A DNA stretch of 64,000 nucleotides, from NCBI GenBank assembly GCA_002269645.1, contig NIVC01000702.1:310001-374000 (forward strand). Reading direction: 5' to 3'. The notes beneath the pieces were generated by a model. That model saw only the letters and a list, made by a program, of their open reading frames with translations, was not told the origin of the DNA and ran no database searches. The DNA comes from Macrostomum lignano (lineage: Eukaryota). Below are positions 24,922-59,559 of this stretch, piece by piece. Position numbers and translations under genes: made by a program. The stretch's first letter is position 1, and each line of letters begins with the position of its first letter.

Positions 24922-25170
24922 GTTCATAAAACCAAAGACTTGAGCTGTGCCATGCATTTTTATGATTTCAAGGTACAGGAAATGTACGTAGAATAAAAAA
25001 TTAACATATAATCCTAATTTTTTGAAGGAAAAGCTTTATGAATATCAAAGGAGCTATAAGAAAGGCACAACATATCAAAATATGAACATTGGGTCTGCCT
25101 CCCATCGAAAGCAATAACATTTTTGTGTTGAAAAATGAAAACTTCCTATCTCCGTAGCTAGTGTATTTTT
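24922..25170. mobile_element. Foldback MITE-like element (copy 2, right half)
   Basis: Matches the right arm of the family (gtacaggaaatgtacgtagaataaaaaatt...aatgaaaacttcctatctccgtag). Confidence 0.65.
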
Positions 25171-30200: not shown

Positions 30201-30890
30201 CTGCTGACGTCGGATGACTTTGAAAGTTAGTTCGTCGGAAAGGGCGGAAAATTTTGATCCACATGGTGAACTTTTACGAAAATCGGTAAATCGGTTTGCG
30301 AGCTATCGTGAAATGGGTCGTGTGTTTTTGTAATACACCCCGTGGTCTTTCCCCATGGGGAAAATAGCGTGGTCTTTCTACTGTTAACACGGAGCTACTT
30401 CTTGTCCATAATATAATTTTAGTATTGACAAAAAGTCAGCCCGTGTTATGGATTTTCGTGTGTCTGCGTGGCTCCGTGAAAAATATTTTTTTTAAAAAAG
30501 AAAAGAAAGTTGCGCAGCCGTAAAGTCGTTTTTTGGTTTTGCCAGTCACTGTAAGGCATCCATGCAAGCCTATAGTTGGAAAGTAGCATGAATTATTGAA
30601 ATAACTTTAAAATATTTGATCAGAAGATATTATCTTCAACTATTTTTGTGGGTCTACGCCATACCCAGAAACCCAGAAAAACTTTATACTTTCCCTGTAG
30701 GTTTGAAGTTCTGCAACAAAAAATTTAAACTATTCAAAAATGCAAATTTACACGTGGCAAAAACTTATTTTGTATTTAAAGCTGCAAGTCTCTTTCTACT
30801 TGAATGTTCGACATAAGAAGGATTTATACTCCGAATTCATTCTCCGAGGACCGAAGCGATTATAAGATTATTAACTCCGGTAGTCAAGCC

Positions 30891-32247
30891 ATGCAAAAGC
30901 GCTGCGTGCTTCTCTTCCTTGTCCTCTGCGTGTCGCTGGTTCCGTACGCCTCTGCTGCAGAGTTTCAGGTGAACTTCTTGAAGAAGCCTCCTAGCATCAT
31001 GTACAACCTGTTCTATGAGAAGTACGAGCTCGATCTGGCCCTCAAAATCACTGAGGTCGCCTCGCAGAGTCCTGACGGGAAGCGGAAAGTCACCGGACTA
31101 AAAGTGATACCTGAAAATGGAATGCAAAAGCAGGACTTCGGTGCCACCGTGCTGGCTCGAGTGTCCAGCGATGGAACTTCGGGCAAACTTGTCTTCGTGT
31201 GCAGAACCTTGCACAGGTGCATGAGTATTAGGAAAAAAATCTCTGATCATCCTCTCTTCATCCAGCAGGCTGTGCAGTTCGCGCCCTTCGGTACGCAGGG
31301 CCCCATTCCCACTCAGTTTGGTGCCGTCCGCTCTGCATCCGGCCCTGCACCCGTCCCTGCTGAGGTGGTCTTCCAGAGGCACCTGGACAACAGCCTCTCG
31401 TTCGCCCAGAACTGGCACGGCTACGTGAAAGGATTCGGAGATCCCAGCGGCAATTACTGGATGGGTGAGTAGTTAATTATGTTTACATCGGCTCACTATA
31501 AATCTGTACGTCAATAATAGCTGAAAACTTAGCTATAAGTCGCGTATCGCTCCCAGACTTTGGCATTCCAGCTCAAGCTCAATACTCGAATGTGGTCCCT
31601 AAGCAACCAATGAATGAATCAGACTGGGAATCAAGTAACAATGATAACCAATAGCATTCGGCCACCAGAGAGAGAAGGGTATTCGATTTAGAGTGTCACT
31701 TGTATTGGCTAACAAGTGATGCATGGGTATCTTTAGCTGAAAAATCTGTATACTACAGGGGTAAAAATCAAATCAAAAAAGTTACAAACAGTTTTTATTT
31801 GAACTCCTCAATCCGACAGGTTTAGAGCAGCTTTTAGCCATGACAAAAGACCGTCATTGCCAGCTCATCTATGAGGGAGTTCGGATCGATAACGGTAAAC
31901 TTATGCGTGGGACTTTCAAGCGCTTTGGGCTGCACGGAGCGGACGAGAACTACAAGCTGGTGCTCGAAGATCAGGAGCCGGGTGGTGACCTCTGGAAAGG
32001 TACCGCCGAGTATTTCAACGCAATGCAGTTCAGCACCTTTGATGCGGATAATGATAAATATAAAGGAGAATGCACAAAGGAGCAAGGACACAATGCTGGC
32101 TGGTGGTATAAAGACTGTCATCGCTTAAATCCAAATAGTTGGATCACCACTTCTCCGAGTTTCTGCTGGAATTGGTGCTCAGCAGTTGATGTAAACAAAA
32201 TAGACATTTGCATTAAGAGTACGAAGCTGTCCTTCAGCTGCAGCTGA
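30891..32247 (+). CDS. Secreted fibrinogen-related domain protein (FReP), copy A
   Basis: Exons 30891-31464 and 31820-32247 join in phase 1 (NYWMG|LEQL). Signal peptide [22 protein letters not shown]; FReD motifs [39 protein letters not shown] and GWWYKDCHRLNPN. Confidence 0.9.
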
Positions 32248-32721
32248 GACAAACGTCTGCAAGACCGGCTCCTGTTGGGGACTGCGAGATTCAACTAAAG
32301 CTTTCTGGTCTCAGTAAATAAATGAATAATAAATGACTGTTGTACCAGCCTTAACTATAGTATTCCACTGTTTCTCCGTGTTTCTTTTTGGCTATTGAAG
32401 GCGGGAGGGGGGTATGGGAGTGAAAAATCGACATAACATTTAGAAGTCCGGAAGTCTCTATACGAATATAGGCCCATATCACGGCGCAAGTCCATCCTCA
32501 AGTTAAATCAAGTCTACGACGTAGAACATTACAGATCTAAACTTGTAGTCAACCACGAATTCTGTTAAAATTGACGGCGTGCCGTTATTGGCACAGAAAT
32601 CGAAGTCAGGACAGAACCGATTGCAAGAAACTATCTACAGTAATAGCAATCGAAGCTGAAAACTTTAGAAGCTTTTTCTTTGTACAATTTTGCTTTTGAT
32701 GTGTACAAGTAGTATTTGAAG

Positions 32722-32723
<2 letters not shown>

Positions 32724-32771
<48 letters not shown>
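32724..32771. repeat. (GT)n microsatellite (copy A)
   Basis: Directly visible; counterpart at 49291-49322. Confidence 0.9.
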
Positions 32772-32772
<1 letters not shown>

Positions 32773-33082
32773 AGGGATGAAAGTGTTTCAGGCTCAAAGA
32801 AATGTGTCAGTGAGGAAGGAAGGTATATTTTGTAAGACCGTGGGTTGAATTGCAGAGAATAACAAAACGTGAGGAGACCTCACTGGCTCACGCCAATATA
32901 TTTAATGTCAAAGTTGGGGTGGGTGTAACCACCCTAAGCACGCACACGCCGCAGCACTAAACCCCAACCCCCAAACCAGCCAGACGTGCACATCTAAGTG
33001 CACGCGCACCAACAAGCCAGACTACAATTTATTCGGAAGAAACTAATGCGTCAGGAGTGAATGAACGCCTCAGCGATGAAGT

Positions 33083-33866
33083 AACAACAACAACAACAAA
33101 GAACTCCTTCCACCGACCACACGAAGTGGCCAGAGGAGGAGGAGTCAGATGGCACTCCGATGGGCCAGGTCCCTCAGAAAGTCACACCCGCCCGCCTGGT
33201 CAAGGGCCTTTCGCCCTTGGCCTCGCCTGCGCGGTCCCTGCAGCTGAAGCAGCAGCACGTCATGCAGCGGCTCCCGGCAGCGAGCTTCCGACAGGATGAC
33301 GTGGCCAGCCAGTCGGCGTCGTCGCCCGCGCAGCAGGTCAGAAGGCCGCGTCAGGCTTGCCCTCTCATAGAGCGCGGCGTTCGTCTCGGTGCCTGGGCCG
33401 CAACGAACTCTAAAAGCAGCACACAGCATGGCCGCATGCGCAGCGTCCAGCTGCCCCTCTAAGGGCGTCCGTCAGGGTCCAGGTCTCTGCGTTGTACAAC
33501 AGGATAGTCTCAACGACTGCCTGGAACAGCTGAGACCTGAGCCATCCAGGGCCCCAGAGTGCAGCACAGCGCACAGTGCGGAGAGCAGCCCAGGCCAGTC
33601 TGCGCCGTCTCGCCAGGTCGCCGGCGTCATCTGGAACGAGGCCGTCGAGGAACACGAAGTGCCTGCTGCGGGTAGCGAAGTCACTGGGCAGCGGTTCCTC
33701 ATGAGTAGATGATCTCGGCCGGCAAGTCCGAAGGGACCGTGAATACTTTGGTCTTCTGCGCAATCGGCGTGAGTCCGAACCGCGCCGCTGTCACCGTCAG
33801 ACCAACCAGCAGCCGTTGGGCGCCTTCGGCCGTCGATCGGACAGCAGCGTGAGGTCGTCCGTGTAG
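33083..33866 (-). mobile_element. 5'-truncated, degenerate non-LTR retrotransposon (RTE-like) 3' fragment, copy A
   Basis: The minus strand encodes YTDDLTLL (RT YADD box), FQAVVETILLYNAETW and RRRRLAGH, with stops and frameshifts. It ends in a (TTG)n tail. Confidence 0.8.
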
Positions 33867-33980
33867 ACAGACAGACACTAAGACAGACAGACAGACAGAC
33901 AGACACTAAGACAGACAGACAGACAGACAGAAAGACACTAAGACAGACACTAAGACAGACAGACAGACAGACAGACAGAC

Positions 33981-34079
<99 letters not shown>

Positions 34080-34082
34080 CTA

Positions 34083-34159
<77 letters not shown>

Positions 34160-34177
34160 TAGACAGACAGACAGATG

Positions 34178-34233
<56 letters not shown>

Positions 34234-34235
34234 GG

Positions 34236-34270
<35 letters not shown>
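33866..34270. repeat. (GACA)n microsatellite (copy A)
   Basis: Directly visible; abuts the RT YTDD codons. Confidence 0.97.
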
Positions 34271-34272
<2 letters not shown>

Positions 34273-34855
34273 TCATCAGAGAAGTCAGGGCATCCACTGC
34301 TTCACTGACAGTCTGTCTATGTGCGAAGGCAAGGGTGTGGGGATCCTGCAAGAGTCTTCATCTTAGTGTAAATGGCTTGGTTTTTCTATCCGAAGTCATG
34401 GCCATCAGCCAATGTGCTGAGCAACTACACAATGCTAACATCATGGTAGCTTTGACATAAATTTATACTCTGACAGTCAGACCGCTATAAGGCCTTGTTC
34501 TCTACCAAGCTGTCTGCTGTCTCTTTAAGTAATATTGACCTCAGAGGACATACTCGTACATGTATCTCACTACAAAGCTGTTTTTTCTCCTATTTGCCCC
34601 TATTGTGGCTTAGAGAATGAAAATCCAACGCACCACGTCACCTCGGCTGTCCCGGTAAGGTTAAACGAATCTGCGGTCTGCCTGCGCGGATTCTTCCGGG
34701 ATTTCTGCTGCTGGCGAGGATAGGAGCAGTCCCAAGGCTAGTAACGCCTTTCTGTTTTTTTTAGCTTGGGGTTGAGATCAAGGACGACTCAAGCTTTCCG
34801 TTGAAGGACGGAAAACCTTGTTTCTTAGAAAATTGAAGAAAGGTTTTTTTCTCCG

Positions 34856-35312
34856 AAAAAAATACACTACGGAGATAGGAAGTTTTCATTTTTCAGCACA
34901 AAAATTGTTATTGCTTTTGATAGGAGGCAGACCCAGTGTTCATCTTTTGATATGTTGTGCCTTTCTTATTTGCATGTACATGTATCTTGTGCCTAAAAAA
35001 CCATTAAAATGACACGGCTCAGCTCTTTGGTTTCATGAGTCTATTTTATCATTCTTAGCTGACTGTATAACAAATATTTGTAACAGAGATGATAAAATAG
35101 ATTCATAAAACCAAAGATTCGAGCTGTAGCATGCATTTTTATGATTTTTAGGTACAGGAAATGTACGTAGAATAAAAAATTCACATAGAATCCTAACTCT
35201 TTGAACAAAAAGCTTTATGAATATCAATAGAGCAATAAGAAAGGCACAATTAACATATCAAAAGATGAACACTGGATCTGCCTCCTATCAAAAGCAATAA
35301 CATTTTTTGTTA
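34856..35312. mobile_element. Foldback MITE-like element (copy 3)
   Basis: Nested inverted arms, e.g. ttgataggaggcagacccagtgttcatcttttgatatg versus catatcaaaagatgaacactggatctgcctcctatcaa, and tctttggtttcatgagtctattttatcat versus atgataaaatagattcataaaaccaaaga. Confidence 0.75.
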
Positions 35313-36816
35313 GCAGAGATTGGGGCCTAATGTACTAAAATCTTTAAAAGGATTATGGAAGAAAACAGCTTTCCAGGAAACCGACGACAGAATTCAAAGA
35401 CGCATCTAATTAAGATTTATAAATTAGATAAAATGCATCGATCAAGTAAGTGTTTTTCTGAATTGAATAAAAAAATAATAAGACTAACTTGACCTGCCGC
35501 TGATGAAAAATGCAAGTAAAAAATAATAAAATGTGTTTTTTTAATTCTAACGTACATGCATGCCATTATATGGTCATTTGAAAAATGCATTTTCGAATTA
35601 TAATCGGTCGGTATCCAATATTGAGTAGTTTACTAGTTTCCATTGGTTTTCTTCGCTTTGTATGGCGATAGCTGATTTTCTGAAATTAAAAGTTTAATGT
35701 AAATTCCTTTTAGTTGACTATATGCAGTTACTTTATTGTAAAATAATTTATAGCAAACTTGCAGTGCCGTAAACAATTTAAGTAAAACACGAAACTTTAT
35801 TTTCCAAATTGTACTGCTCATAAAACACAAATCGCTTTTGTTTAAATTAGCTATATTAATTATTCAGTTTAGTTAAAACAAAAATCATGACTATACAAAA
35901 CTGTTTTGTTCATAATTGTATCTATTAAAATGGTAAAATATTTTTGTGTGCAACAGGATGGAATTTAATAAATCATCATTTTAAACAAAGAATCATGTAA
36001 ACGATTTCAATTATTAAATTCATTCCAATTTTAGAATTATTAAAATTTGAGTATTAGAATGCTATTACATGAGCACCTTAGAATTCCAGTATAGATACAA
36101 TTCTTAGACTGTCATTAGATGAGATTCTGATGAGATGACAGATAAGTTAGAATGCCTGCTTGTTTTGGGGGATGCCTGCCTTGTCTGCTGCCTGTTGTGT
36201 CACAAATTTTCCTTACGCACCCAATTTAAAGGTCATATTCATGCCAATGCCAATGCAGCAGGAATTTTAGCATGTAGGGCCAAGGTAGCAATTATTTTTC
36301 CATGCTAAAATTTTACTTGTGATGGCTTTTCAACACATGTGCTTCAAAAACTCACTGATTTCTTCAACTGCTAGAGAAATCTTCGCATAACATTCTGCTT
36401 GTTTCATCCGCCTGCGCACTCAGTCGATTCGTGTTGACTCGAGTTGGCTCTCACCAGACGGCACCAGTCTGTATAGTTTCTGTTGAACGTTAAATTCAAT
36501 GAACAAAAGTTTACAGGTCTGCATCAGGAGTGACAAAATAGATATACGATTATAGAATGGGTCACGAATAATAAAATAGATCAGAGATTACAAAAATAGA
36601 TCATGGTTCACACAATGGTCAGAAAATAAAGAATGGGTCTGAAAATATCCTTTCATTATTTCCCACTTACAGTACACTTTTGGCATTTGCACTTCAAGTC
36701 CCCGTTGTCACTGCCATGGTACAACATAGTAATCACCATCACCACGTCTAGTTTCACTACATTATGGCTTGAGAAAAACATGCAAACATGTGTACATCAT
36801 CGACTCACGCATATGC

Positions 36817-39800
36817 CTAGTCTCCTGTAAGCACTTCAGGGTAAACAACGTTCCTAGTCTTGGTTCCGAAAATTCGCACACGGACATTAGCCGCGTTCTT
36901 CGCTCGTGACAGAGCCGTGTACAGCTGGCCATGAGTGAAGCAACCGACTGCCAGGTCCACGCCAACTGTGTCCAGAGACTGTCCCTGCGACTTGTGGATC
37001 GTCAGGCAAAAACTCGGCTTCACAGGGAACTGCAGCCGCTTAAAACTGACGGGCAGGTCCGCATTGCTTGGAATCAGCGGAATTCGCGGCAGAAGAATCT
37101 CGTCTCCCGTGAACTGGCCGGCGGCAATCTTGCATCTAAGCACGTTATCGCCCATTGCGAGTATGATCAGCCGCGTACCATTGCACATCCGTGGCGGGTT
37201 GATGTTCCTGAGAAGCACCACCGGCATACCGACTTTCAGCCTCAGCAAGTGAATCGGAAAGTTTGGAGCATCCAGCTGGTTGAGCAACTCAGGCGGGAAG
37301 TGCGTAGCGGCATCCTCATCGGCCACGCTGTCTATCGAGCGGTACTCCCGCAGGCTGCCGGGGAACATGCCCAGGCACGTCTCATTAATGGCATCGACAG
37401 AGTCGTTGTAAGGCGCCAGGATCGCTCGGCTTGCAAAATAGCCGTCTCTCTCCACTGACTCCTCAAACGATGGGTAAACAAAATTGATTAGATCAGTGAG
37501 TGGCCCCTCCGCAGATATCACGATCTCGACTGGGAGGGACACTTTCTCCTCCACATCCTGCTCCATTGTTCCAGATCCGATCTGTGAGGAGTGAAACAGT
37601 CAGTCAAAAGCTAGCCAGACTTTTAGGTTAGACATTCTGAATAAAGCACAATAAAAGCATTTTGCATTTTTTTCACAAAAACCCGCCCTTTAAATTTAAC
37701 ACCCGGAATTATTAAATATTTAAGTCAACAAAGACCAAACTTACCTGCTTGAGTAGCTCGGTGTACTTTACATATGTTGCAGAATCGGAACTGCTCAGCA
37801 ATCGGATGTTTCTCGTCAGACGATGCCGCCGGAAAAATTTCCACAGCGGGGATCTACTAACACACGCCATAACGTTATTCGCACGCGTCCCATTCAAAAC
37901 AACTGGCAAGAGCTGGCGATAGTCACCAGCGCAAACAAACACCAGTCCGCCGAATGGCACGTCCTGCTTTCGCACGTCTCGCAAGCACCGGTCGACTACC
38001 TCCAAATCCTTCCGGTTAGTCATGGAAATCTCGTCCCAGACAATTAGACGCGCTGTCCGAAACACGGCGGCTTGTTTGGACTGCGCTCCAACAGAGCAGA
38101 CGTCTTTGTTAGAGCGGACCGCCCGGATAGGGATCTTGAACCTGTCATGAACAGTTGGTTTCGGCGCAATCATGTACAGCGGAACAATGCGGCTTAGTCA
38201 GATAGTAAGCAACTCACGTGGAATGCGCAGTCTGTCCACCTGGCAACAGAGTCGCTGCGATTCCAGAAGCCGCAACGGCGAGGGCGACTTCCCCCCGGCT
38301 GCGCACGAAGGCCAGCAAAACCTCCAGTAGGAAGGTCTTGCCAGTGCCAGCGGGCGCGTCCAGGAAGTGCAAGCCGCCGTTGCCGCTCACAAGATCCTGA
38401 GTCACTGACTCGTACACCGCTTTCTGCTCGTCTGTCAGCATTGGTAAGCGCGCCTCAGTAATCTGCGCTTGCTCGACCGCATCAAACTGCATCGGTCCAA
38501 CTTGAGGCATCGCGGATGCCGCAGGCAGGCCGTAATCTGGCAGGTTGTTCCCGCCCATGGAGGTCAGCATGCTCTGCAGCTCGCGCAGCGCCAGGTCAGT
38601 AATCTCCTCGGTGCTCAAGTCTCGGTAATGAAACCGCAGGTCCTCGCACATATCCTCGGCAAAGCTGCACCAGAGGTCGTTGCCATCATCAGGGTCACCC
38701 CATATGAGAATGACAGCCAGAAGATGTCTCAGGGCTCTTGGCATTCTTGACTGAACGGCCTCAGCTAGGCACCGCCGCCAGTGGTCATCTCGCTGCAGCA
38801 GGCCGAGGGCCATGCAAGCAGCCTTGGCGCTCGGGTGCACAACGCCATCCACAGTCTGCAGCGCCTCAAAGCTGGTTGGTCCCCTAACCTGCAAAAGGAG
38901 CATGCGAACATAAAATAAATCACCAGTTCTTGGGCTCACCGTGTACATGCGTGCAACGTTTGTGTTCCGCACTACACCCGGGTTGCCATCGACTTTCGCG
39001 CCTCGCTTCGCTCGCCGCCACACTCTTTCACTGGCATGCCAAACGAAGTAGGACGGCACCTCCGTGTAGAGCAAGGACCGAGCAAACTCGTCAGTACGGC
39101 ACAGCTTGAAAAATGCCGTCAACGTAGAGTCCCTCGGCGTCCTGGCTCTAGTACTTGCGGTCTGCTCGTTGAAATACACGAGCTGCTCCTCCGACTTGTG
39201 AACGCAGAGCCGGATGACCGCCGGAAATCTGTCGTGCACCTGATCAGAAGGTGGGAGAAATAAATACCTTTAAAGTTGTTGCTGACTTCTAAAGCTCACA
39301 GCTTTGCAATATTTAAAATTTAAAATACTTATTACTTCAAAGCCCAAAATGGTATTCACGGCTTCCATTGGGCCAATGTAGCGCGCAGACAGATACTCCT
39401 TGATTTCATCACGCGGCCTCTCTCCATCGTTTGCCGCTACCGTTTGTGCCGGCTGTTGGCTACCCACAGCCTGCTCTCTCGGATCAGTTGAATTCTTATT
39501 GGCGTCGACTTTGAACGTCGCCATGTCGCCGCCCTTCAGCAAGTACTTGATCACGTACTTGACCGATTTCACAGTGGCACAAACTTCAACGTTCATGTGG
39601 CACGCAAACTGGAGCAACAGGTCAGGGCTGTACGGAACAACCCACCTATATTTTTATTAAAAAAAGAATGTCATTAACTTTTAAAAATACAAAAGCAGAA
39701 AAGTACAATTAGGCAATATCATTTCAACTCGCCTGTTGTCCATGCGAATGCTGCGGCCTTTGAACAGTTTGTCCACCGTAAATCCGCCCATCTCAGGCGA

Positions 39801-42800
39801 GCGTCTGCGATACAAAGGGTAGCCAGTATCGCTGGTCAGCGTCACCTGCTGGAACTCCTTCGGAAAGCCCTTGCTGCATTCGCCATTTTCCATGCAAGGG
39901 CACGCCGGATTCTCCTTGCCGCAGGGGCCATGGATCATGTGCGTCTTCACCAGCTCATACAGCACAGGCTGCTGTCGTGGGTCCGGAATCTCAGCAGACA
40001 CGATGTCATCGTATCGGTCCGGAGTCACCCGCTGGCCACTCGCGAGCCACAGCAGAAAGTGCACATGGGGGAGACCTGAATTATTAAAAAAAATCTCGAA
40101 ACATTTTTCAATCCAGTTATCCAATTTGTATCGAATTTGCATCACACAAACCATGCCTATATTTAGTATTTTTGTAACGATATAAATATTATAAAACTTA
40201 ACACTCAGAGTTGTACTCACCACGCTTTTGGTACTCTAGCGAGCAGACGTGCGCGGCCTCTTTCCCATAGCGCTTCGTTAGCTGAGCCAGCAGAGCTTTC
40301 TTCTTCATTTCAAAGACTCGGCTAACAATGTCCGGCCGGTGTTCAGCCCGCTGTCCAGGCAGCAGCTGAGCGCTAATCTCCGGCCAATTCGGATTGCATG
40401 TTGCCGTGACAAACAGGTCCGGCTTACCAAACTTGTGAACATAGGTCATAGCGTCCTGAAGCCTCTCCATCAGGTACCTTGGCCCGCCAACGAAGCTTGA
40501 GGACAGAAGCACATGCGCGGGCTTGCCTATGTCACTCGGATCTCTGTCGGTAGACCTGCCATCGGCTGCAAACAGAGCGTCCCGCAGACCGCTATACGTC
40601 TCGCTGCGCAGGTCCTGCTGATGGGTCCGCAAATACAGCAACCTCTCTGCCTCAATCTTCGCACACATGTCCACCAGGTACTGTTGAAATAATCTTCGGC
40701 CATAGTGCAGCACACTGAACTGGCCCGCTCGCACCATGATTTCGCTTGCATAGTATTTCATGGGGGTCAATTTCTTGTCATTACTCATCCGCAACTCTGG
40801 GTGCCAGCCGTCCTCGCCATTCGGGAACAGCAGCACATACTCCAGCGGGTCATATGAGCGGTGCGTCTCACTGATTCGCTGAGAACCGCCACCACGCAGT
40901 TGAATCACGACGTCCCGACTGGCCGGTGCGTCCTCATTGTCCTCAACGATCAGGATACCGACCTCGTTTGCCGTAGGCAAGTTGTAGCGCCTGATTTTAA
41001 CGGAGTTCATGGGATACAACTTCTGTAGAAACTGAATCACTTATTACGCTTATTTTACTTCTGCTTTCGTTTACATTTTTAAGTTTCGTTATAACAAACA
41101 CACTAACTTACCGAATGTGTTCCCCAGATGGTCGACGGTCAGGGTGAATCACAATTCGCGCATCTCCCAGCTCTGGGTCTTGGCTAATTCGCTCAGCAGC
41201 AGCCTTCAGGCTGCGGACATAGCCATTGCACTCGTGAAGCAGCGTCTGCAGCAGCTCCAGTAGCTCCGGTTTTACCTTCTGGCTGAGACTCTGGCGGCTT
41301 TCGAGTTCGCGATCGTTGAAGTACACCTGCCATCCCTGAGCTTCAGCCGAAGCCTCTGCAAACAGCGGCGCCGTGCGATGATGCATCTGGCCGCTGATGA
41401 TGAAGCTGGGACACCAGCCTGGCACCAACCGCAGTTTGGCACCCAGCGATGTCAGGTGCAGCGCCGAATTGTAGCTCCTGATGTTGGCCAGGAACTCGGC
41501 ACTCAATCTGTGCCGCCCCATGTACAGATCCGCCAGCACTTGCGGCACGGTGCGGCTGGGCAGCTTCACCTTGCCTTTGGCGCAGCAGAAATTCCTGGTC
41601 TCCGCGCGCCAGAGTAGAGCACCACATTCCTGGCATGCCCTGTTCATTGGGCCGCAATCATGGGCCGGGGCCTCTGGCCTCGGTATTCTGTCAGACCTGT
41701 GATTGAGTTATATGCATGCACAAATAGTTACTATAATATAGACTGCCAAAATTTATGAAATTTACAGTGTAAATATAAAAACTAAAATATAAAAATTACA
41801 CTGACCAGCAGCACAAAAAGCCTACCTATTTTGAGCAGATTCTGCATCAGAATGACCTGTACCAAAATGACCTGAATCGGAAAGATCTGCCCTCTGCCCC
41901 GTTAAACTCGGCGCTTCTGCATCTGCAACGGGCTCAGAAACTGGCAGTGGATCAGTCACGCGCAACGACTCATAGTGTTCATGGCGTAAAAGGATACGCA
42001 CAATTGCAGTGGGTGGCTGCACAGTGGACATGCAGTACTGCAATACACTGCCATTTGCCTGATAAATAACCAGGTCAACATTGAAAAAACGGCTTAAAAG
42101 TGGCACGACCTCATCAGGAACATAGGTGCCCTCAGAAAAAGACTCATTAATAATGGAATCAGCATTATCCGGCAAAACAAAGCCTTCGTCAATTAATTCG
42201 GGCATTACCTGCACTGCACGACATGTCAGTTCATGCCTCAAAGACGCTGCATTGGTCTCAAGCGGAGTGCCCTGCAACTGGTCACATACTGCATGAAAAA
42301 AGCAATTTCCATCACCAGGGATTGGAACAACACTTAGCGTATTGAATGGTACCACAGCTGGTGTGGCCAACTCACTATTGTCAAACCTGAAAGATTGAAG
42401 TTATACTTTAGACTCTGAAAAACTCATTCCCACTGATACAGATTCCTAGAGAGTCAACAAAAAGTCAATTCTCACAAATGCAGACCCTTACAAACATTCC
42501 TCCACATACAGTTTCTTACAGTGGTTTCTTAGAAATTCTGATTCTTAGCACAAATCCTACAAATAAAGATTCTTAAAAACGTATCCTAGAAATGCAGTTT
42601 CTTATATAAACACAGTCCTACAAATAAAGATTCTTCGAAATCGAAACGTTTCCTAGAAATGCAGTTTCTTATATAAACACAGTCCTACAAATAAAGATTC
42701 TTAGAAACGTTTCCTAGAAATGCAGTTTCTTATGTAAACACAGTCCTACAAATAAAGATTCTTAGAAACGTTTCCTAGAAATGCAGTTTCTTATGTAAAC

Positions 42801-44188
42801 ACAGTCCTACAAATAAAGATTCTTAGAAACGTTTCCTAGAAAAGCAGTTTCTTATGTAAACATAGTCCTACAAATAAAGATTCTTAGAAACGTTTCCTAG
42901 AAATGCAGTTTCTTATGTAAACACAGTCCTACAAATAAAGATTCTTAGAAACGTTTCCTAGAAATGCAGTTTCTTATATAAACACAGTCCTACAAAAAAA
43001 GATTCTTAGAAACGTTTCCTAGAAAAACAGTTTCTTATATAAACATAGTCCTACAAATAAAGATTCTTAGAAACTTTTCCTAGAAATGCAGTTTCTTATA
43101 TAAACACAGTCCTACAAATAAAAAATTCTTAGAAACGTTTCCTAGAAAAGCAGTTTCTTATATAAACATAGTCCTACAAATAAAGATTCTTAGAAACTTT
43201 TCCTAGAAATGCAGTTTCTTATATAAACACAGTCCTACAAATAAAAAATTCTTAGAAACGTTTCCTAGAAAAGCAGTTTCTTATATAAACATAGTCCTAC
43301 AAATAAAGATTCTTAGAAACTTTTTCTAGAAATGCAGTTTCTTATATAAACACAGTCCTACAAAAAAAGATTCTTAGAAACGTTTCCTAGAAATGCAGTT
43401 TCTTATATAAACACAGTCCTACAAATAAAGATTCTTAGAAACGTTTCCTAGAAATGCAGTTTCTTATATAAACATAGTCCTACAAATAAAAAATTCTTAG
43501 AAACGTTTCCTAGAAAAGCAGTTTCTTATATAAACATAGTCCTACAAATAAAGATTCTTAGAAACTTTTCCTAGAAATGCAGTTTCTTATATAAACACAG
43601 TCCTACAAATAAAGATTCTTAGAAACGTTTCCTAGAAATGCAGTTTCTTATATATAAACACAGTCCTACAAATAAAGATTTTTACAAACGTTTCTCAGAT
43701 ATGCAGTTTCTTACAAACACATTCCTACAAACAAAGATTCTTAGAAAGTTTCTTAAAAATACAGTTCATCTCTACAAATAAACATTTTTTGAAACGTTTC
43801 TTAGACTTAGATATACAGATACAGTCAAATTAAAATGTTCATCTCACCTGTTAACCGACACTCCTCGACGGCGAATTTGGTCGGCCTCCACTCGAGCTCT
43901 TCGCTGAGCCTCAGTTTCCGTGGCCCTACGCTCACTTGTGCGCCGCCGAGCTGCAGTTAGGCGCTCTTCTCGCTGAGCGTCGGTCTCCACGGCACTCCGC
44001 TTAGCCTTTTGCTGTCGGAGTCCAGCCAGGCGCTCTTCGCGCTGAGCGTCGGTCTCCCTGGCCCTTCGTTCAGTCTCCTGCTGCCGGTGTGCAGCCAGGC
44101 GCTCCTCTTGTTGAACAGCGGTCTCTTGCTGACGTTTCTTTTTGGCATCTCTGCTCTTTTTCAAAGCGCTGGTGCCACGTCGAGCCAT
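36817..44188 (-). CDS. Helitron RepHel polyprotein: STPR-like repeats, OTU protease, Cys-rich Zn finger, HUH/Y2 Rep and Pif1-family helicase; 9 exons, about 1697 aa
   Basis: Exons 44188-43848, 42386-41826, 41696-41112, 40990-40221, 40075-39733, 39645-39336, 39239-38218, 38141-37745 and 37581-36817 have compatible phases (5094 nt total, no internal stop). Motifs ETDAQREERL, GDGNC/HYES, CQECGA..CCAKG, RYNLPT, EYQKRGLPHVH, DNRWVVPY, KYVIKYLLKG, DAPAGTGKT, WDEISM, GDYRQLLP and TIHKSQGQSL. Confidence 0.93.
42540..43800. repeat. Minisatellite, 61-bp unit (Helitron intron 1)
   Basis: About 20 copies of aaacacagtcctacaaataaagattcttagaaacgtttcctagaaatgcagtttcttatat. Confidence 0.95.
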
Positions 44189-44639
44189 TTTAGAATTTGG
44201 ATCGAAAAATATGATAGGAATTGAATTGAAAAATAAGATAAGTAGAATTAGAATGAAAAAGTAAAGATAGTCTGAGTGAGGGGTTGTGTGATAATTGACA
44301 AAGATAAGAAAACAATCATGACAAACATTTTAAACTCAGCGCACCACCGCCACCCCAAAAAGCTGTACACTATTCAGTGTTAATAAATGTACACTAAACG
44401 TAAATTCTCTCCAGCGCCCGCTGCTAATTGGTCAAGCTGCCCTTTAAAGCCAAAATTCTCCTTACAAAACTGCTAATAAAATGGTCAAAGTCAACAAGCA
44501 GCGATAAACAAATAGATGTGCAAATACTCGTGCACATTTTACACTCATCTTTTTTACCACAAAGTTGTTAGCAATGTTGCATTGAAAACTTTCAATAAAA
44601 ATCGCTTATTTATATGAAAGTCGCTCTCTGCAATGCAGT

Positions 44640-45250
44640 CTTGGTCTTGGTAATCCTTGGTTTATTAATAGCAATAATCTTTGGCTTCTTGTAATCCTTG
44701 GTTTATTAATAGCAATAATCCTTGATTAATCAAGTGCATTAATCCTTGGTTTATTAATAGCAATAATCCTTGGCTTATTGAGTGCAGTAATCCTTGGTTT
44801 GCCAAGAGCAATAGTCCTTGATTTAATCCTTGGTTTATTAATAGCAATAATCCTTGGCTTCTTGAGTGCAGTAATCCTTGGTTTGCCAAGAGCAATTGTC
44901 CTTGGTTTATCGAGTGCAGTAATCCTTGGTTTATTAATAGCAATAATCCTTGGCTTATCGAGTGCAGTAATCCTTGGTTTATTAATAGCAATAATCCTTG
45001 ATTAATCAAGTGCATTAATCCTTGGTTTATTAATAGCAATAATCCTTGGCTTCTTGAGTGCAGTAATCCTTGGTTTGCCAAGAGCAATAGTCCTTGATTT
45101 AATCCTTGGTTTATTAATAGCAATAATCCTTGGCTTCTTGAGTGCAGTAATCCTTGGTTTGCCAAGAGCAATAGTCCTTGGTTTATCGAGTGCAGTAATC
45201 CTTGGTTTATTAATAGCAATAATCCTTGGCTTATCGAGTGCAGTAGTCTA
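44640..45250. repeat. Minisatellite, 24-bp variant units (aatccttggtttattaatagcaat / aatccttggcttcttgagtgcagt) in the Helitron 5' region
   Basis: Tandem array with repeated higher-order blocks. Confidence 0.9.
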
Positions 45251-45912
45251 AGTGTTTTTATTTAGTCCTTTAATAAAAGCTTTTAATAAAAAAATTTACA
45301 CTACTACTTTTAAACTACTTAGATTCGAAGCCAGGTCGCTGCATTAGCAGTCTGGTCTGTTCAGCTCTAGGCTAGCTCTCATCGAAGTTATCAGTGAATT
45401 TGTACCACTTATATAATTCAACACTTACACCAAGTCAGGTAGAGTAAAAAGTCACACGAAGCAGTTATGACATAATCAATTTCTTAGGCAAGTCAGTACC
45501 AGTGTCTATGAAAGTTAACAATATGGTTACGTAATATAAATTCAGTACTGCGCTATGCTTTCACACTCAAAGCTGTGACGCAATTCAATTGAGTGTCAAA
45601 TTCAGCCAGTACACAGACGATAAACAAAGTGTATTGTGATGCAATCTATTTCAGAATCAGAATTCAACCAGTCAGATTTTTCTCTAGCATTCTTACAATG
45701 CATTTCAGGTCGAAAGAGCTGCTTGACCTTTGCAAAAAATCATGTTTTTCGAATATTTAATCCCTTTAACATTGAGCAATTTCTTAGCCAAGATGCATGT
45801 ACCGTCACGGAAAAATTTCTGATCGAACAGTGCAAGTTCGAACAAAATCGGTTGAGCCGTTTTTGCTAAAATCGATCACACACATACCGACAGACCATTT
45901 TTAGTATATGGA

Positions 45913-46207
45913 TGTGAATTTTTTATTCTACGTACATTTGCATGTACATGTATCTTGTGCCTAAAAAACCATTAAAATGACACGGCTCAGCTCTTTGGTT
46001 TCATGAGTCTATTTTATCATTCTTAGCTGACTGTATAACAAATATTTGTAACAGAGATGATAAAATAGATTTATAAAACCAAAGATTCGAGCTGTAGCAT
46101 GCATTTTTATGATTTTTAGCTACAGGAAATGTACGTAGAATAAAAAATTCACATAGAATCCTAACTCTTTGAACAAAAAGCTTTATGAATATCAATAGAG
46201 CAATAAA
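45913..46207. mobile_element. Foldback MITE-like element (copy 4, truncated at the Helitron 5' end)
   Basis: Near-identical to 51122-51393; 45913-45940 is the inverted match of about 46127-46154. Confidence 0.75.
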
Positions 46208-47132
46208 TAAAATCGGTTTGCGAGCTATCGTGAAATGGGTCGTGTGTTTTTGTATTAAACACGCCGGAAGGAGCCAAACGAGACAAAGTCAGTTGCGAAA
46301 GGCAGGCAGCGGCCGAGAAAGCGGATCCCTGTGGATCAAGCGAAGCGTTTATTTATTAGTTTAAACGAGTTAATATTTATTGGTTCGTAAAAAGAAGATA
46401 AAAAATTGAGAAATGGCGGCGGAGCCAAGCCGGGCCGGGTGCAGAGGCTTTAAGCTGGCCGGCGCGGCCAACACCCCCATAACTCAACCCCCCGCCAAAG
46501 TACAGCGATATGTACAGCGGCACCCTCCGGCGCGTCTAACACCCTTACTCAGAGAGTAACGATTGCAATACACCCCGTGGTCTTTCCCCATGGGGAAAAA
46601 TCGTGGTCTTTCTACTGTTAACACGGAGCTACTTCTTGTCCATAATATAATTTTAGTATTGACAAAAAGTCAGCCCGTGTTCTGGATTTTCGTGTGTCTG
46701 CGTGGCTTCGTGAAAAATATTTTTTTTAAAAAGAAAAGAAAGTTGCGCAGCCGTAAAGTCGTTTTTTGGTTTTGCCAGTCACTGTAAGGCATCCATGCAA
46801 GCCTTCTTGGAAAGTAGCATGAATTATTGAAATAAAAACTTTAAAAAAATTGATCAGAAGAAATGATCTTTAACTATTTTTGTGAGTCTACGCCATACCC
46901 AGAAACCCAGAAAAACTTTAGACAATTTCCCTGTAGGTTTGAAGTTCTGCAACAAAAAATTTAAACTATTTAAAAATGCAAATTTACACGTGGCAAAAAA
47001 CTTTTTTGTACTTAAAGCTGCAAGTCTCTTTCTACTCGTACTTGAATGTTCGACATAAGAAGGATTTATACTCCGAATTCATTCTCCGAGGACCGAAGCG
47101 ATTATAAGATTATTAACTCCGGTAGTCAAGCC

Positions 47133-48835
47133 ATGCAAAAGCGCTGCGTGCTTCTCTTCCTTGTCCTCTGCGTGTCGCTGGTTCCGTACGCCTCTGCTGC
47201 AGAGTTTCAGGTGAACTTCTTGAAGAAGCCTCCTAGCATCATGTACAACCTGTTCTATGAGAAGTACGAGCTCGATCTGGCCCTCAAAATCACTGAGGTC
47301 GCCTCGCAGAGTCCTGACGGGAAGCGGAAAGTCACCGGACTAAAAGTGATACCTGAAAATGGAATGCAAAAGCAGGACTTCGGTGCCACCGTGCTGGCTC
47401 GAGTGTCCAGCGATGGAACTTCGGGCAAACTTGTCTTCGTGTGCAGAACCTTGCACAGGTGCATGAGTATTAGGAAAAAAATCTCTGATCATCCTCTCTT
47501 CATCCAGCAGGCTGTGCAGTTCGCGCCCTTCGGTACGCAGGGCCCCATTCCCACTCAGTTTGGTGCCGTCCGCTCTGCATCCGGCCCTGCACCCGTCCCT
47601 GCTGAGGTGGTCTTCCAGAGGCACCTGGACAACAGCCTCTCGTTCGCCCAGAACTGGCACGGCTACGTGAAAGGATTCGGAGATCCCAGCGGCAATTACT
47701 GGATGGGTGAGTAGTGTAATCTGTACGTGTACACGTTTGTACATATCGTCGGTGAGAATTAACTGCCGCCAGAACCGCTGTCTGCCGTCTCATTTCAAGC
47801 TCAATTATGTGGCGTCTGGGTGACACTTGTATTAGGCCGAATCTCCAGCTAATCAATATCCTCACCGTCCACCAAAAGAGAGGGCCAGGGGTATCTACTG
47901 CTACAGAAATAGGAAGCAGACCCCCAATGTTCATCTTTTTGATGTGGTTGTGCCTATCCTATTGCTCTATCAATATTCATAAAGCTTTTCGTTCAGAAAA
48001 TTAGGATTCTATATGTTAATCTTTTATTATACGTACATTTCCTGCACCTAAAAATCATTAAAATGGCATATGGCACAGCTCCAATCTTTGCTTTTGTGAA
48101 TATATTTTATCATCTCTGTCTGTTACACATATTGTTACACAGAACACAGTCAGCTAATAATGGCAAAATAGATTCATAAAACCAAAGAGCCGAGCTGTGC
48201 CATTTTAATGGTTTTTAGGCGCTGGACATACGCAATTGTACGTAGAATCAAAACTTAACATAGAATCCCAATTTTAAAGTTTAAAAGGTAGGCCTTTGCG
48301 AGTGAGATGTTACAGTAGATGGAAATCTTTAACTACGGGCTGAAAATCAAATCAACAAACAGGTTTACAAAGGAGTTTTAATTCATTTGAACTCATCAAT
48401 CCGACAGGTTTAGAGCAGCTTTTAGCCATGACAAAAGACCGTAATTGCCAGCTCATCTATGAGGGAGTCCGGCTCAATAACGGTAAACTTATGCGTGGGA
48501 CTTTCAAGCGCTTTGGGCTGCACGGAGCGGACGAGAATTACAAGCTGGTGCTCGGAGATCAGGAGACGGGTGGTGACCTCTGGAAAGGTACCGCCGAGTA
48601 TCACAACGGATCGCAGTTCAGCACCTTTGATGCGGATAATGATAAAGCAAAAGGAGTATGCACAAAGGTGCAAGGACACAATGCTGGCTGGTGGTATAAT
48701 TCCTGTCATCGCTTAAATCCAAATAGTAGGATCAACACTTCTCCGAGTTCCTGCTGGGATTGGTGCTCAGCAGCTGATCTAAACAACAAAGACACTTGCA
48801 TTAAGAGTACGAAGCTGTCCTTCAGCTGCAGCTGA
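47133..48835 (+). CDS. Secreted fibrinogen-related domain protein (FReP), copy B
   Basis: Exons 47133-47706 and 48408-48835. Exon 1 is identical to copy A; exon 2 keeps [14 protein letters not shown] and all cysteines. Confidence 0.9.
47895..48280. mobile_element. Foldback MITE-like element (copy 5, divergent, in the FReP-B intron)
   Basis: Arms aatgttcatctttttgatgtggttgtgcc and aaaatagattcataaaaccaaagagccgagctgtgcc match the family; absent from the FReP-A intron. Confidence 0.6.
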
Positions 48836-49287
48836 GACAAACGTCTGCAAGACCGGCTCCTGTTGGGGACTGCAACTGTTGCACTTTCACCGAGATGCAA
48901 CTGAGGCTCTCTGGTCTCAGTAAATAAATGAATAATAAATGACTGTTGTACCAGCCTTAACTATAGTATTCCACTGTTTCTCCGTGTTTCTTTTTGGCTA
49001 TTGAAGGCGGGAGGGGGTAGGTATGGGAGTGAAAAATCGACATAACATTCAGAAGCCCAAAAGTCTCTTTACGAATATATAGACCCATATCACGGCGCAA
49101 GTCTATCCTCAAGTTAAATCAAGTCTGCGACGTAGACCATCACAGATCTAATCTTGCAGTCAATCTGCATGAATCCTGTTAAAATTGACGGCGTGACGCT
49201 TGTTGGCAAAGAAATTAAAGTCAGGACAGAACCGAACGCAAGAAACTATCTTCTGATTGCTTTTGATGTGTACATGTAGTATTTGAA

Positions 49288-49332
<45 letters not shown>

Positions 49333-49439
49333 CAGGGATGAACGTGTGCCAGGCTCAAAGAAATGTGTCAGTGTGGAAGGAGGGTACATTTATTCTGAAG
49401 AAACTATGTGTCGGGAGTGAATGAACGTCTCAGCGATAA

Positions 49440-50221
49440 ATAACAACAACAAAGAACTCCTCCCACCGACGACCACACGAAATGGCCAGAAGGAGGAGGA
49501 GTCAGATGGCACTCCGATGGGCCAGGTCCCTCAAAGTCACACCCGCCCACCTGGTCAGGGGTCGTTCGCCCTTGGCCTCGCCTGCGCGGTCCTTGCAGCT
49601 GAAGCAGCAGCACGTCATGCAGCGGCTCCCGGCAGCGAGCTTCCGACAGGATGACGTGGCCAGCCAGTCGGCGTCGTCGCCCGCGCAGCAGGTCAGAAGG
49701 CCGCGTCAAGCTTGCCCTCTCATAGAGCGCGGCGTTCGTCTCGGTGCCTGGGCCGCAACGAACTCTAAAAGCAGCACACAGCATGGCCGAATGCGCAGCG
49801 TCCAGCTGCCCCTCCAGGTCGTCCGTCAGGTTCCAGGTCTCTGCGTTGTAGAACAGGACAGTCTCAACGGCTGCCTGGAACAGCAGATCTGAGCCTGTCA
49901 TCCAGGGCCCCAGAGTGCAGCACAGCGCACAGTGCGGAGAGCAGCCCAGGCCAGTCTGCGCCGTCTCGCCAGGTCGCCGGCGTCATCTGGAACGAGGCCG
50001 TCGAGGAACACGAAGTGCCTGCTGCGGGGTAGCGAAGTCACTGGGCAGCGGTTCCTCATGAGTAGATGATCTCGGCCGGCAAGTCCGAAGGGACCGTGAA
50101 TACTTTGGTCTTCTGCGCAATCGGCGTGAGTCCGAACCGCGCCGCTGTCACCGTCAGGCCAACCAGCAGCCGTTGGGCGCCTTCGGCCGTCGATCGGACA
50201 GCAGCGTGAGGTCGTCCGTGT

Positions 50222-50222
<1 letters not shown>
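49440..50222 (-). mobile_element. 5'-truncated RTE-like retrotransposon fragment, copy B
   Basis: Same motifs as copy A (YTDD, FQAAVETVLFYNAETW, RRRRLAGH). Confidence 0.8.
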
Positions 50223-50468
<246 letters not shown>

Positions 50469-51011
50469 TCATCGGAGAAGCCAGGGCATCCACTGCTTCA
50501 CTGACAGTCTGTCTATGTGCGAAGGCAAGGGTGTGGGGATCCTGCAAGAGTCTTCATCTTAGTGAAAATGGCTTGGTTTTTCTATCCGAATTCATAGCCA
50601 TCAGCCAATGTGCTGAGCATAAATTTATACTCTGACAGCCAGACCGCTATTAAGGCCTTGTTCTCTATCAAGCTGTAAGCTGTCTCTTTAAGTAAAATTG
50701 ACCTCAGAGGACATACTCGTACATGTATCTCACTACAAAGCTGTTTTTTCTCCTATTTGCCCCTATTGTGGCTTAGAGAAGGAAAATCCAACGCACCACG
50801 TCACCTCGGCTGTCCCGGTAAGGTTAAACGAATCTGCGGTCTGCCTGCGCGGATTCTTCCGGGATTTCTGCTGCTGGCGAGGATAGGAGCAGTCCCAAGG
50901 CTAATAACGCCTTTCTGTTTTTTTAGCTTGGGGTTGAGATCAAGGACGACTTAAGTTGAAGGACGGAAAACCTTGTTTCTTAGAAAATTGAAGAAAGGTT
51001 TTTTTTCTCCG

Positions 51012-51470
51012 AAAAAATACACTACGGAGATAGGAAGTTTTCATTTTCAGCACAAAAATTGTTATTGCTTTTGATAGGAGGCAGACCCAGTGTTCATCTT
51101 TTGATATGTTGTGCCTTTCTTATTTGCATGTACATGTATGTTGTGCCTAAAAAACCATTAAAATGACACGGCTCAGCTCTTTGGTTTCATGAGTCTATTT
51201 TATCATTCTTAGCTGACTGTATAACAAATATTTGTAACAGAGATGATAAAATAGATTTATAAAACCAAAGATTCGAGCTGTAGCATGCATTTTTATGATT
51301 TTTAGCTACAGGAAATGTACGTAGAATAAAAAATTCACATAGAACCCTAACTCTTTGAACAAAAAGCTTTATGAATATCAATAGACCAATAAGAAAGGCA
51401 CAATTAACATATCAAAAGATGAACACTGGATCTGCCTCCTATCAAAAGCAATAACATTTTTTGTTAGCAG
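51012..51470. mobile_element. Foldback MITE-like element (copy 6)
   Basis: Duplicate of copy 3 within block B. Confidence 0.75.
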
Positions 51471-52499
51471 AGATTGGGGCCTAATGTACTAAAATCTTTA
51501 AAAGGATTATGGAAGAAAACAGCTTTCCAGGAAACCGACGACAGAATTCAAAGACGCATCTAATTAGGATTTATAAATTAGATAAAATGCATCGATCAAG
51601 TAAGTGTTTTTCTGAATTGAATAAAAAAATAATAAGACTAACTTGACCTGCCGCTGATGAAAAATGCAAGTAAAAAATAATAAAATGTGTTTTTTTAATT
51701 CTAACGTACATGCATGCCATTATATGGTCATTTGAAAAATGCATTTTCGAATTATAATCGGTCGGTATCCAATATTGAGTAGTTTACTAGTTTCCATTGG
51801 TTTTCTTCGCTTTGTATGGCGATAGCTGATTTTCTGAAATTAAAAGTTTAATGTAAATTCCTTTTAGTTGACTATATGCAGTTACTTTATTGTAAAATAA
51901 TTTATAGCAAACTTGCAGTGCCGTAAACTATTTAAGTAAAACACGAAACTTTATTTTCCAAATTGTACTGCTCATAAAACACAAATCGCTTTTGTTTAAA
52001 TTAGCTATATTAATTATTCAGTTTAGTTAAAACAAAAATCATGACTATACAAAACTGTTTTGTTCATAATTGTATCTATTAAAATGGTAAAATATTTTTG
52101 TGTGCAACAGGATGGAATTTAATAAATCATCATTTTAAACAAAGAATCATGTAAACGATTTCAATTATTAAATTCATTCCAATTAGCTAAAGTCAGCGTC
52201 TTTGAAGTCTGTCAAATAGTGAAAGGCAACCTGCAAATTTAAAGAGGGCACTGTACTTTGGCCGAATTGAGGAGAACATTTTTATGTAGCAAGTCATGCT
52301 TTTAAATAAAAGAATACTTTGTTTAGGTTTTTTAGAAAATATAACTTACCTAACAACTAAAAAAGTGTCGACAACGAATCAAATTAAGCTTAAAATTGCC
52401 ACTCGCTTCACCAGTGAGCGTCCCAGATGTTCCTGTGCCGGTTCGATGCGGTGAAAAATATCCTTTATCAATAGGATAGGACTGTGATCAAATACTCGT

Positions 52500-59496: not shown

Positions 59497-59559
59497 CTGT
59501 CTAGATTGATATTATTTGAACAACCTAACACCGACTTCACAATTGGGTTGGAGTTTTAT

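Follow-up and report, generated by a model that had tools for sequence, protein, structure and literature searches.

How can two neighbouring genes have first exons identical to the last nucleotide, and second exons in which nearly every differing codon changes the amino acid? This question is raised by a 64,000-nt stretch of the genome of the flatworm Macrostomum lignano (contig NIVC01000702.1 of the Mlig_3_7 assembly, positions 310,001 to 374,000; hereafter the window, in which introns and microsatellites are present), where two genes for proteins with a fibrinogen-related domain (FReD), here called A and B, lie 16.2 kb apart with a Helitron-bearing spacer between them, on one of the subgenome copies of this neopolyploid genome. 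Each gene has two exons and an open reading frame (ORF) of 333 amino acids encoding a secreted protein, and no third copy was found in the window by tBLASTn. An earlier reading, made from the letters alone (the sequence-only reading), had described a constant exon 1 and a hypervariable exon 2, the latter taken as a sign of positive selection. From our comparative analysis, genes A and B are recombination mosaics in which exon 2 is part of a block of older lineage, and the finding, real as it is, is largely explained by mosaic ancestry.

The exon counts of the sequence-only reading were reproduced, since exon 1 was identical at 574 of 574 nt and exon 2 presented 29 substitutions in 428 nt, without any indel, distributed over 24 codons, 22 of them non-synonymous and two synonymous (GTT/GTC and AAC/AAT). 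If differences fell uniformly over the 1002 nt, the probability of finding all 29 in exon 2 would be (428/1002)^29, about 2e-11. The assignment of both genes to the FReD family was borne out by Pfam, in which Fibrinogen_C (PF00147) was the only match (96.4 bits for A and 101.4 bits for B; cut-off 22), as was the conservation of the core motifs, with the seven exon 2 cysteines (7/7), DADND, and GWWY..CH being kept in both copies. The changes listed as radical and multi-nucleotide need some sorting, with F257H, M260S, Y272A, and D290S being multi-nucleotide, whereas W299R and I319K are radical but single-nucleotide. Sequencing or assembly error was rejected as the source of the 29 differences, which are all substitutions, include zero indels, and are reproduced in an independent annotation. 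In fact, the sole B-type database entry (UniRef A0A1I8HQX8, P0012) was predicted from an older, separate assembly and is mis-spliced; it is identical to B over 274 amino acids, and its tail reads through a B-private 18-nt 3' insertion. Since this annotation of an independent assembly matches B, the B-type sequence is real and not an artefact.

A segment of 5.7 kb is present twice in the window (units A and B, Table 1), as identified by self-BLAST and four-way alignment. Two further contigs, NIVC01001671.1 (L001) and NIVC01001984.1 (L003), are 98-99% identical to the window and carry one gene each, with 0 nt differences from A in exon 2; in both, the gene is directly followed by FAIM1 and PDZ genes, which in the window are located downstream of B. 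Mlig_3_7 consists mostly of three-copy S/L1/L2 blocks with 1.4-2.4% single-nucleotide divergence (PMC10733133), a structure with which the two one-gene sister contigs agree. When A, B, L001, and L003 were compared in sliding windows, three zones were distinguished (Table 1). Over exon 1 and the 570 nt before its ATG, B is close to A, and over positions 30776-31477 no A-B difference was found, including 115 nt of non-coding sequence 5' of the ATG. A divergent block of 1.3-1.6 kb follows, with abrupt edges at the intron start and at a (GT)n tract. Within it, the 3' flanks of A and B differ at 36 of 507 positions and by at least six indels, and the introns are alignable by BLAST at their ends only; once a miniature inverted-repeat transposable element (MITE)-like insertion is removed, they are homologous (score 59.5, against 32.8 ± 5.6 for shuffled sequences), with about 77% identity and many indels. 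Downstream of the block, beginning some 0.5 kb after the stop codon, B is again as near to A as the subgenome copies are to each other.

Since exon 1 has a synonymous divergence (dS) of 0 and its non-coding neighbours are identical as well, its identity goes back to recent common descent or to gene conversion and not to purifying selection. Moreover, exon 1 does diverge across the family (dS 0.24, dN/dS ratio [omega] 0.25), and in the block the intron and the 3' flank have diverged at least as much as exon 2. Consequently, the contrast between a constant and a hypervariable exon could not be upheld as a product of selection or mutation. As a side observation, dS to the clade of the paralogues Mlig014133g1 (L004) and Mlig014133g2 (L005) is 0.24 in exon 1 and 0.45 in exon 2, i.e., about half in exon 1, a hint that homogenisation of exon 1 has extended to more distant paralogues as well.

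The differences in exon 2 were polarised with L004, L005, L007, and L006 as outgroups, by which eight of the 29 were derived on A, ten were derived on B, and 11 were ambiguous, the last mostly at sites that vary from paralogue to paralogue. The A-derived states include both synonymous sites, the two-nucleotide change H257F, and G259A; the last two destroy the near-universal FReD motif HNG, turning it into FNA. At eight nucleotide positions B agrees exactly with L004 as well as L005, whereas A and its two subgenome counterparts have the derived nucleotide. The maximum likelihood (ML) branch lengths were 0.10 for A and 0.12 for B. Since the A-derived states are fixed in all three subgenome copies, the A/B split in the block predates the divergence of the subgenomes, and therefore B is not a recent, fast-mutating copy of A. 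Targeted hypermutation or a rapid burst after duplication is contradicted by this polarisation. In this context, it is highly improbable that B is a recent tandem duplicate whose exon 2 alone has evolved fast, under positive selection or hypermutation, with exon 1 held by purifying selection. This explanation draws on the exon contrast (0/574 versus 29/428), the 22:2 ratio of non-synonymous to synonymous codons, and an omega above 1 on the A and B branches; against it stand the shared ancestry of exon 1 and its non-coding surroundings, the divergence of the non-coding parts of the block, the invariance of the A-type exon 2 in three subgenome copies, and the reversion that a recent copy of A would need at all eight sites shared by B, L004, and L005. 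More generally, an identical exon beside a variable one with a striking ratio of replacement to silent changes can stem from recombination mosaicism, and such cases should first be polarised and compared in their non-coding flanks.

Codon models were fitted with our own GY94/F3x4 implementation, not with PAML or HyPhy, on four to six sequences. For exon 2, the pairwise NG86 estimates were dN 0.082 (Nd=26.2/N=341.2) and dS 0.034 (Sd=2.8/S=84.8), a ratio of 2.4, against a family background omega of 0.41-0.45 in exon 2 and 0.25 in exon 1; this dS is lower than the divergence of the flank (7%) and of the intron (about 23%), the intron itself not being homogenised. By pairwise ML, omega was 3.2, above the family value of 0.43 (p=0.0008). 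In a branch model, omega was 3.76 on the A and B terminal branches and 0.34 in the background, which differs from a single ratio at p=3e-5, and the foreground value differs from 1 at p=0.032. The comparison of M1a with M2a in exon 2 gave a likelihood ratio statistic of 20.4 with six taxa (p=4e-5; 13% of sites at omega 6.5) and 13.4 with four close taxa (p=0.0013), and for exon 1, used as negative control, no selected class was detected (p=0.20). Sites of high posterior probability in the six-taxon test include 272, 279, 290, 299, 306, 316, and 321. At the same time, exon 2 contains no indel or stop in its 428 nt, where about five indels would be expected at the rate of the flank (P about 0.006), and the invariant FReD columns, all cysteines, and the Ca motif are unchanged in A and B, which denotes coding constraint on both copies. 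In brief, the replacement rate is clearly raised over the family norm, with the coding frame kept.

Regarding the location of the variable residues, D266-x-D268-x-D270, the C276...C291 pair, and His292 align, at motif level, with D393/D395/S397, C401-C414, and H415 of FIBCD1, and A, B, and the paralogues all keep D266, D268, D270, and C276...C291-H292; the roles of the FIBCD1 residues in the Ca site, the cis-peptide, and the S1 pocket are taken from its published description (PMC3908420). In the motif alignment to ficolin-1 and FIBCD1, residues 272, 275, and 279 belong to the Ca-loop/helix that leads from the Ca site to GWWY, residues 289-290 stand directly before the Cys-His of the S1 cis-peptide, and residues 299-321 take the place of the FIBCD1 loops with Tyr431/Ala432/Trp443. 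Additionally, the loop between DADND and GWW is different in every family member. The S1 aromatics (equivalents of FIBCD1 Tyr405/Tyr431/Ala432/Trp443) are not evident, with Gln/His found four residues after C276 and no Tyr-Ala in 299-321, in a C-terminal part where the alignment is insecure. It is plausible, judging by these motifs, that the variable sites lie near an S1-type ligand pocket. The clustering of changes around the Ca site, GWWY, and the C-terminal loops, as the sequence-only reading had it, is seen in 17 of the 22 replacements falling within residues 257-321 (p=0.003, for a region chosen post hoc), but a-priori clustering tests gave p=0.12-0.15.

Taken together, we favour, with moderate confidence, that A and B are mosaic duplicates in which exon 1 was recently copied or homogenised, the exon 2 block is old, and ligand specificity has diverged. 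On this account, the identity of exon 1 comes from recent duplication and/or interlocus gene conversion, as its silent and non-coding sites show, and the exon 2 differences gathered on both lineages before the subgenome split, as polarisation shows. Within exon 2, replacement runs about three-fold over synonymous change and is concentrated in the Ca-loop, the segment before Cys-His, and the C-terminal loops, which in ficolins and FIBCD1 line the S1 ligand pocket. The ligand specificity of the two lectin-like heads would most likely have diverged, and selection for difference, together with intron heterology, may shield the island from the conversion that homogenises the remainder.

Several points weigh against this interpretation. 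The excess of non-synonymous change in exon 2 has a pairwise Fisher p of 0.13, the pairwise ML omega of 3.2 differs from 1 at p=0.08, and with the four multi-nucleotide codons masked the branch omega falls to 2.8, which exceeds the background (p=0.0006) but not, significantly, 1 (p=0.12). Besides, the foreground branches were picked after the data had been seen, recombination inflates site tests, and the proximity of the variable sites to the pocket is a matter of motif alignment only. The island's intron is its most diverged part and its left edge is abrupt, which a single patch or breakpoint event fits at least as well, and no donor of the B block was found among L004/L005, P0140, and P0003. 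Only a single PacBio contig shows A and B in tandem, four-copy blocks of Mlig_3_7 are often redundancy artefacts (PMC10733133), and gene B is apparently unannotated in GenBank. As for the positive selection that the sequence-only reading had proposed, a selected site class was recovered in exon 2, and an omega above 1 on the A and B branches was recovered only nominally, the signal against 1 being lost when multi-nucleotide codons are masked. Considering the small sample, the post-hoc foreground, recombination, multi-nucleotide changes, and our own software, an omega above 1 in exon 2 is suggestive and not secure, and selection has probably, though not provably, contributed to exon 2.

Some of these statistics also speak for relaxed constraint, i.e., for a scenario in which one copy, probably B, were redundant or silent and drifted neutrally, the ratio of replacement to silent changes being noise plus multi-nucleotide mutations. 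In favour of this scenario, besides the lack of significance against 1 in the pairwise (p=0.08-0.13) and masked (p=0.12) tests, B apparently has no GenBank protein record (the 90% cluster contains A-type NCBI proteins only, g1-g3), it has only 570 nt of its own upstream sequence beside a transposon, and the family has pseudogenised relatives (a stop in the second L005 copy, L005b, and a frameshift in L006). We regard it as unlikely, since exon 2 is free of indels and stops next to a flank with at least six indels in about 500 nt, the cysteines, Ca site, and invariant FReD columns are intact in both copies, the changes are split over both lineages, including the A type conserved on three subgenomes, and the site models return the same hypervariable positions across clearly functional paralogues.

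Two histories fit the mosaic structure. In the first, an old A/B pair has been under gene conversion, and B was lost from the two other subgenomes by unequal crossing-over at different points, which is consistent with the grouping of B with L001 and of A with L003 downstream of the block. In the second, a young duplication had its central block overwritten from an unsampled diverged paralogue. The L004/L005 clade was rejected as such a donor because it stands at the same distance (81% identity) from A and from B, and P0140 and P0003 were rejected as belonging to the L004 clade and not being B-type. The downstream grouping could also be read as an assembly artefact, by which A and B would derive from different subgenomes or aneuploid variants joined via the Helitron spacer, B being a divergent allele or homeolog. 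The assembly indeed has four copies of the unit against the typical three, most four-copy blocks have three-fold read coverage (PMC10733133), and the join crosses 10.5 kb of transposon and repeat sequence. This we consider quite unlikely: in the block B differs alike from L001, L003, and A, and is a fourth distinct sequence regardless; the B type occurs in the annotation of an independent assembly; both unit boundaries are sharp and unique; and the family forms tandem arrays elsewhere (L005). Besides, it would alter the label (allele or paralogue) and not the mosaic or the dN/dS result. Returning to mosaic duplicates with diverged heads, a more far-reaching version, which we consider improbable, is a germline two-head system. 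In it, conversion would keep the N-terminal module, as an effector or oligomerisation part, identical, and balancing or diversifying selection would keep two old FReD binding cassettes of distinct function; this flatworm-specific lectin family would serve to recognise microbes, self and non-self, or gametes, and its copy number would vary from subgenome to subgenome.

The protein itself combines a FReD with an orphan N-terminal module. The Fibrinogen_C match covers residues 159-300, at model positions 44-188 of 221, and since it starts at position 44, the FReD A subdomain is absent; correspondingly, structural alignments span about 180 of about 217 target residues, and residues 133-154 are a low-confidence linker. 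In the AlphaFold2 model, residues 159-333 have a pLDDT above 90 and superimpose on the heads of ficolin, ANGPTL2, MFAP4, and FIBCD1 (Foldseek E about 1e-14, TM about 0.7), and PDB sequence matches to angiopoietin, ficolin, and tenascin were found at 1e-17. For the N-terminal module (residues 24-132, pLDDT 77) there was no PDB neighbour at E<=0.001 by Foldseek and no Pfam match. An Ig-like fold was rejected for it (best Ig-like chain E=0.48, TM 0.28; no Ig Pfam match), and the architecture is, as had been proposed, distinct from that of snail fibrinogen-related proteins (FREPs), with no IgSF domain by Pfam or Foldseek. In a HMMER search of 1.84 billion representative proteins, the module was found in six proteins only, all from M. 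lignano, as were all full-length relatives in a search of 5.8 billion proteins. The family comprises about eight gene clusters (Mlig005727, 014133, 009561, 025557, 019353, 019538, 009296, and 009779/017068). Judged by these sequence searches, the combination of this module with a FReD is a lineage-restricted architecture, known from M. lignano only.

Other family members deserve mention. The Mlig014133g2 locus is a tandem array, with an exon-2-like fragment upstream (L005 8-374) and, 9.4 kb downstream, an exon-1-like copy (L005 19414-19856) that is a pseudogene with an in-frame stop and a lost frame. In Mlig009561g2 (L006 10687-11120), the frame is disrupted near the end of exon 2 and the model is cut to 213 amino acids, due to either pseudogenisation or an assembly indel. 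A predicted M. lignano protein of 1222 amino acids (UniRef A0A1I8FXL4, P0132), in which retroelement reverse transcriptase (RT)/RNase H is fused to a distant member with N-module and FReD, is probably a chimeric gene prediction. As for the gene models at the locus, sequence L002 corresponds to window positions 20804-42247 of the same contig at 100% identity. The GenBank models g1 and g3 use an upstream in-frame ATG that adds 29 residues (MFDIRRIYTPNSF...) ahead of the signal peptide (L001 10001-10087; L002 10001-10087, equal to window 30804-30890), and model g2 begins at MQKRC; the longer version is likely to be an error of annotation. Mlig005727 had no mention in the literature and no entry in the genome-paper supplements, and no expression data were found. 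Scans for bacterial-type promoters and terminators, Rfam families, and tRNAs were uninformative or empty at this eukaryotic locus.

Table 1. Coordinates, within the 64,000-nt window, of the duplicated units, the two FReD genes, the zones of the mosaic, and the intervening repeats.
Feature	Position	Strand	Description or basis
Duplication unit A, 5.7 kb	30328..36030	+	563 nt upstream, FReD gene A, 3.8 kb downstream; self-BLAST, four-way alignment
Unit A right junction	36030/36031		...CCAATT / TTAG
Duplication unit B, 5.6 kb	46563..52184	+	Self-BLAST, four-way alignment
Gene A exon 1, 574 nt	30891..31464	+	Signal peptide, orphan N-terminal module, linker, start of FReD B subdomain; ORF, GT donor, identity to PAA61964.1/P0010
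Gene A intron, 355 nt	31465..31819	+	GT..AG
Gene A exon 2, 428 nt incl. stop	31820..32247	+	FReD B/P subdomains, A-type (FNA in place of conserved HNG)
Gene B exon 1	47133..47706	+	100% identical to gene A exon 1
Gene B intron, 701 nt	47707..48407	+	
Gene B exon 2, 428 nt	48408..48835	+	B-type, ancestral HNG motif kept
Mosaic zone 1, upstream and exon 1	A 30383-31477		A-B differences no more than those among subgenome copies
Mosaic zone 2, A side of divergent block	31478..32785	+	A = L001 = L003 (0-2 differences per 200 nt), with B distinct from each of them
Mosaic zone 2, 'old' B block	47720..49346	+	Intron, exon 2, about 510 nt of 3' flank; 7% mismatches, at least 6 indels
Mosaic zone 3, downstream of (GT)n tract to end of 5.7 kb unit			B and L001 versus A and L003, then patchy
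(GT)n microsatellite, copy A	32724..32771		Right edge of divergent block
(GT)n microsatellite, copy B	49291..49331		Right edge of divergent block
Spacer between units, 10.5 kb	36031..46562	-	Absent from sister contigs
Degenerate Helitron Rep/Hel	36817-42370	-	At least 6 ORFs; Helitron_like_N 9e-46, PIF1 8e-35, Pif1_2B 1e-15
MITE-like piece of unit, about 290 nt	45912-46206		Third copy, 99% identical, in spacer
MITE-like palindromic repeat, about 360 nt	47909..48271		Inserted in B intron

Apart from the degenerate Helitron, the spacer holds an ORF with STPR repeats and tandem repeats, and an ORF at 41822-42370 with an OTU-like 'GDGNCFFHA' has no Pfam match. Helitrons end in 5' TC and CTRR 3' with a hairpin, and insert between A and T. 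Capture of the unit by the Helitron was rejected, given that the junctions have neither canonical termini nor this insertion site, and that the units flank the element and do not lie inside it; the association is positional only. The MITE-like family, of about 300-360 nt and with internal inverted symmetry, has its other copies at 34991-35288, 51145-51442, 45912-46206, 24923-25102, and 3657-3757, three of the copies being 99% identical to one another and the others 80-88%.

Elsewhere in the window, long (GACA)n/(TGTC)n microsatellites occur once per unit (33870-34270 and 50222-50468) and, near the window end, as a 1.4 kb inverted-orientation array (60543-61963). Downstream of the gene, both units have a GC-rich, ORF-bearing segment (33100-33763 and 49460-50060, minus strand) with a 117-amino acid ORF lacking a Pfam match, which may be a transposon remnant. 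Dense minisatellite arrays are found at 5486-6262, 6794-7466, 8033-8998, 9607-10167, 11645-13134, 14146-16111, and 22511-24657, and further at 52503-53133, 53849-54615, 56628-57024, 57563-58196, 58704-58999, and 59551-60016, with long ORFs running through minisatellites at 10240-13194 on the plus strand (984 amino acids, in a 64% GC stretch) and at 22402-24636 on the minus strand (744 amino acids).

Among known lectins, A and B come structurally closest to the heads of ficolin, FIBCD1, and tachylectin-5A, which they resemble in the fold of the B/P subdomains (residues 159-333, with Foldseek matches to M- and L-ficolin, ANGPTL2, and MFAP4) and, at motif level, in the Ca motif, the Cys276-Cys291 pair, and His292. 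They differ from these proteins in having neither the A subdomain nor a coiled-coil stalk, in a shorter C-terminal segment with additional cysteines, in the orphan N-module that takes the usual place of the oligomerisation region, and, in the A type, in FNA for HNG; unlike ficolins, they have no Gly-X-Y repeats and no collagen-like stalk. This orphan module joined to a FReD without A subdomain is a modest addition to FReD architectures.

Expanded FReD families are known from the FBG genes of mosquito and Drosophila (PMC1242226, PMC2429915) and from the B. sudanica genome (PMC10875847). With snail (Biomphalaria) FREPs and invertebrate FReD families, the M. lignano genes share secretion, an N-module followed by a C-terminal FReD, and membership in a multigene family that is lineage-specific and includes tandem copies and pseudogenes. 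In work by Zhang et al. from 2004, snail FREPs are reportedly diversified by gene conversion and point substitutions. In contrast to the snail FREPs, the M. lignano family is small (about eight gene clusters), and its diversity is germline and between two loci, with nothing indicating somatic diversification. If the differences change ligand specificity, this would be a compact case of a neopolyploid flatworm diversifying a lineage-specific lectin family.

The closest parallel to the layout of the locus is found in gene-converted duplicates in which divergence peaks persist around selected sites, such as exon 5 of the red/green opsins and RHCE/RHD, as treated in the model of Teshima and Innan (PMC3924837). 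Like the opsin and RH genes, A and B are tandem duplicates, such pairs lying about 16-24 kb apart, and are near-identical except for a local divergence peak with many amino-acid differences in one exon. In the opsin genes, homogenisation reaches the introns on either side, and the peak lies on a few functional codons, whereas in M. lignano the peak extends over 1.3-1.6 kb, with the intron most diverged and the edges abrupt; a single recombination or patch event and a peak maintained by selection are equally good origins for such an island. If the differences do alter ligand specificity, the locus would also be a clean natural example of a divergence island within otherwise homogenised duplicates. 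In the four-way comparison, A and B have homogenised flanks on both sides of the peak, as in the divergence-peak model.

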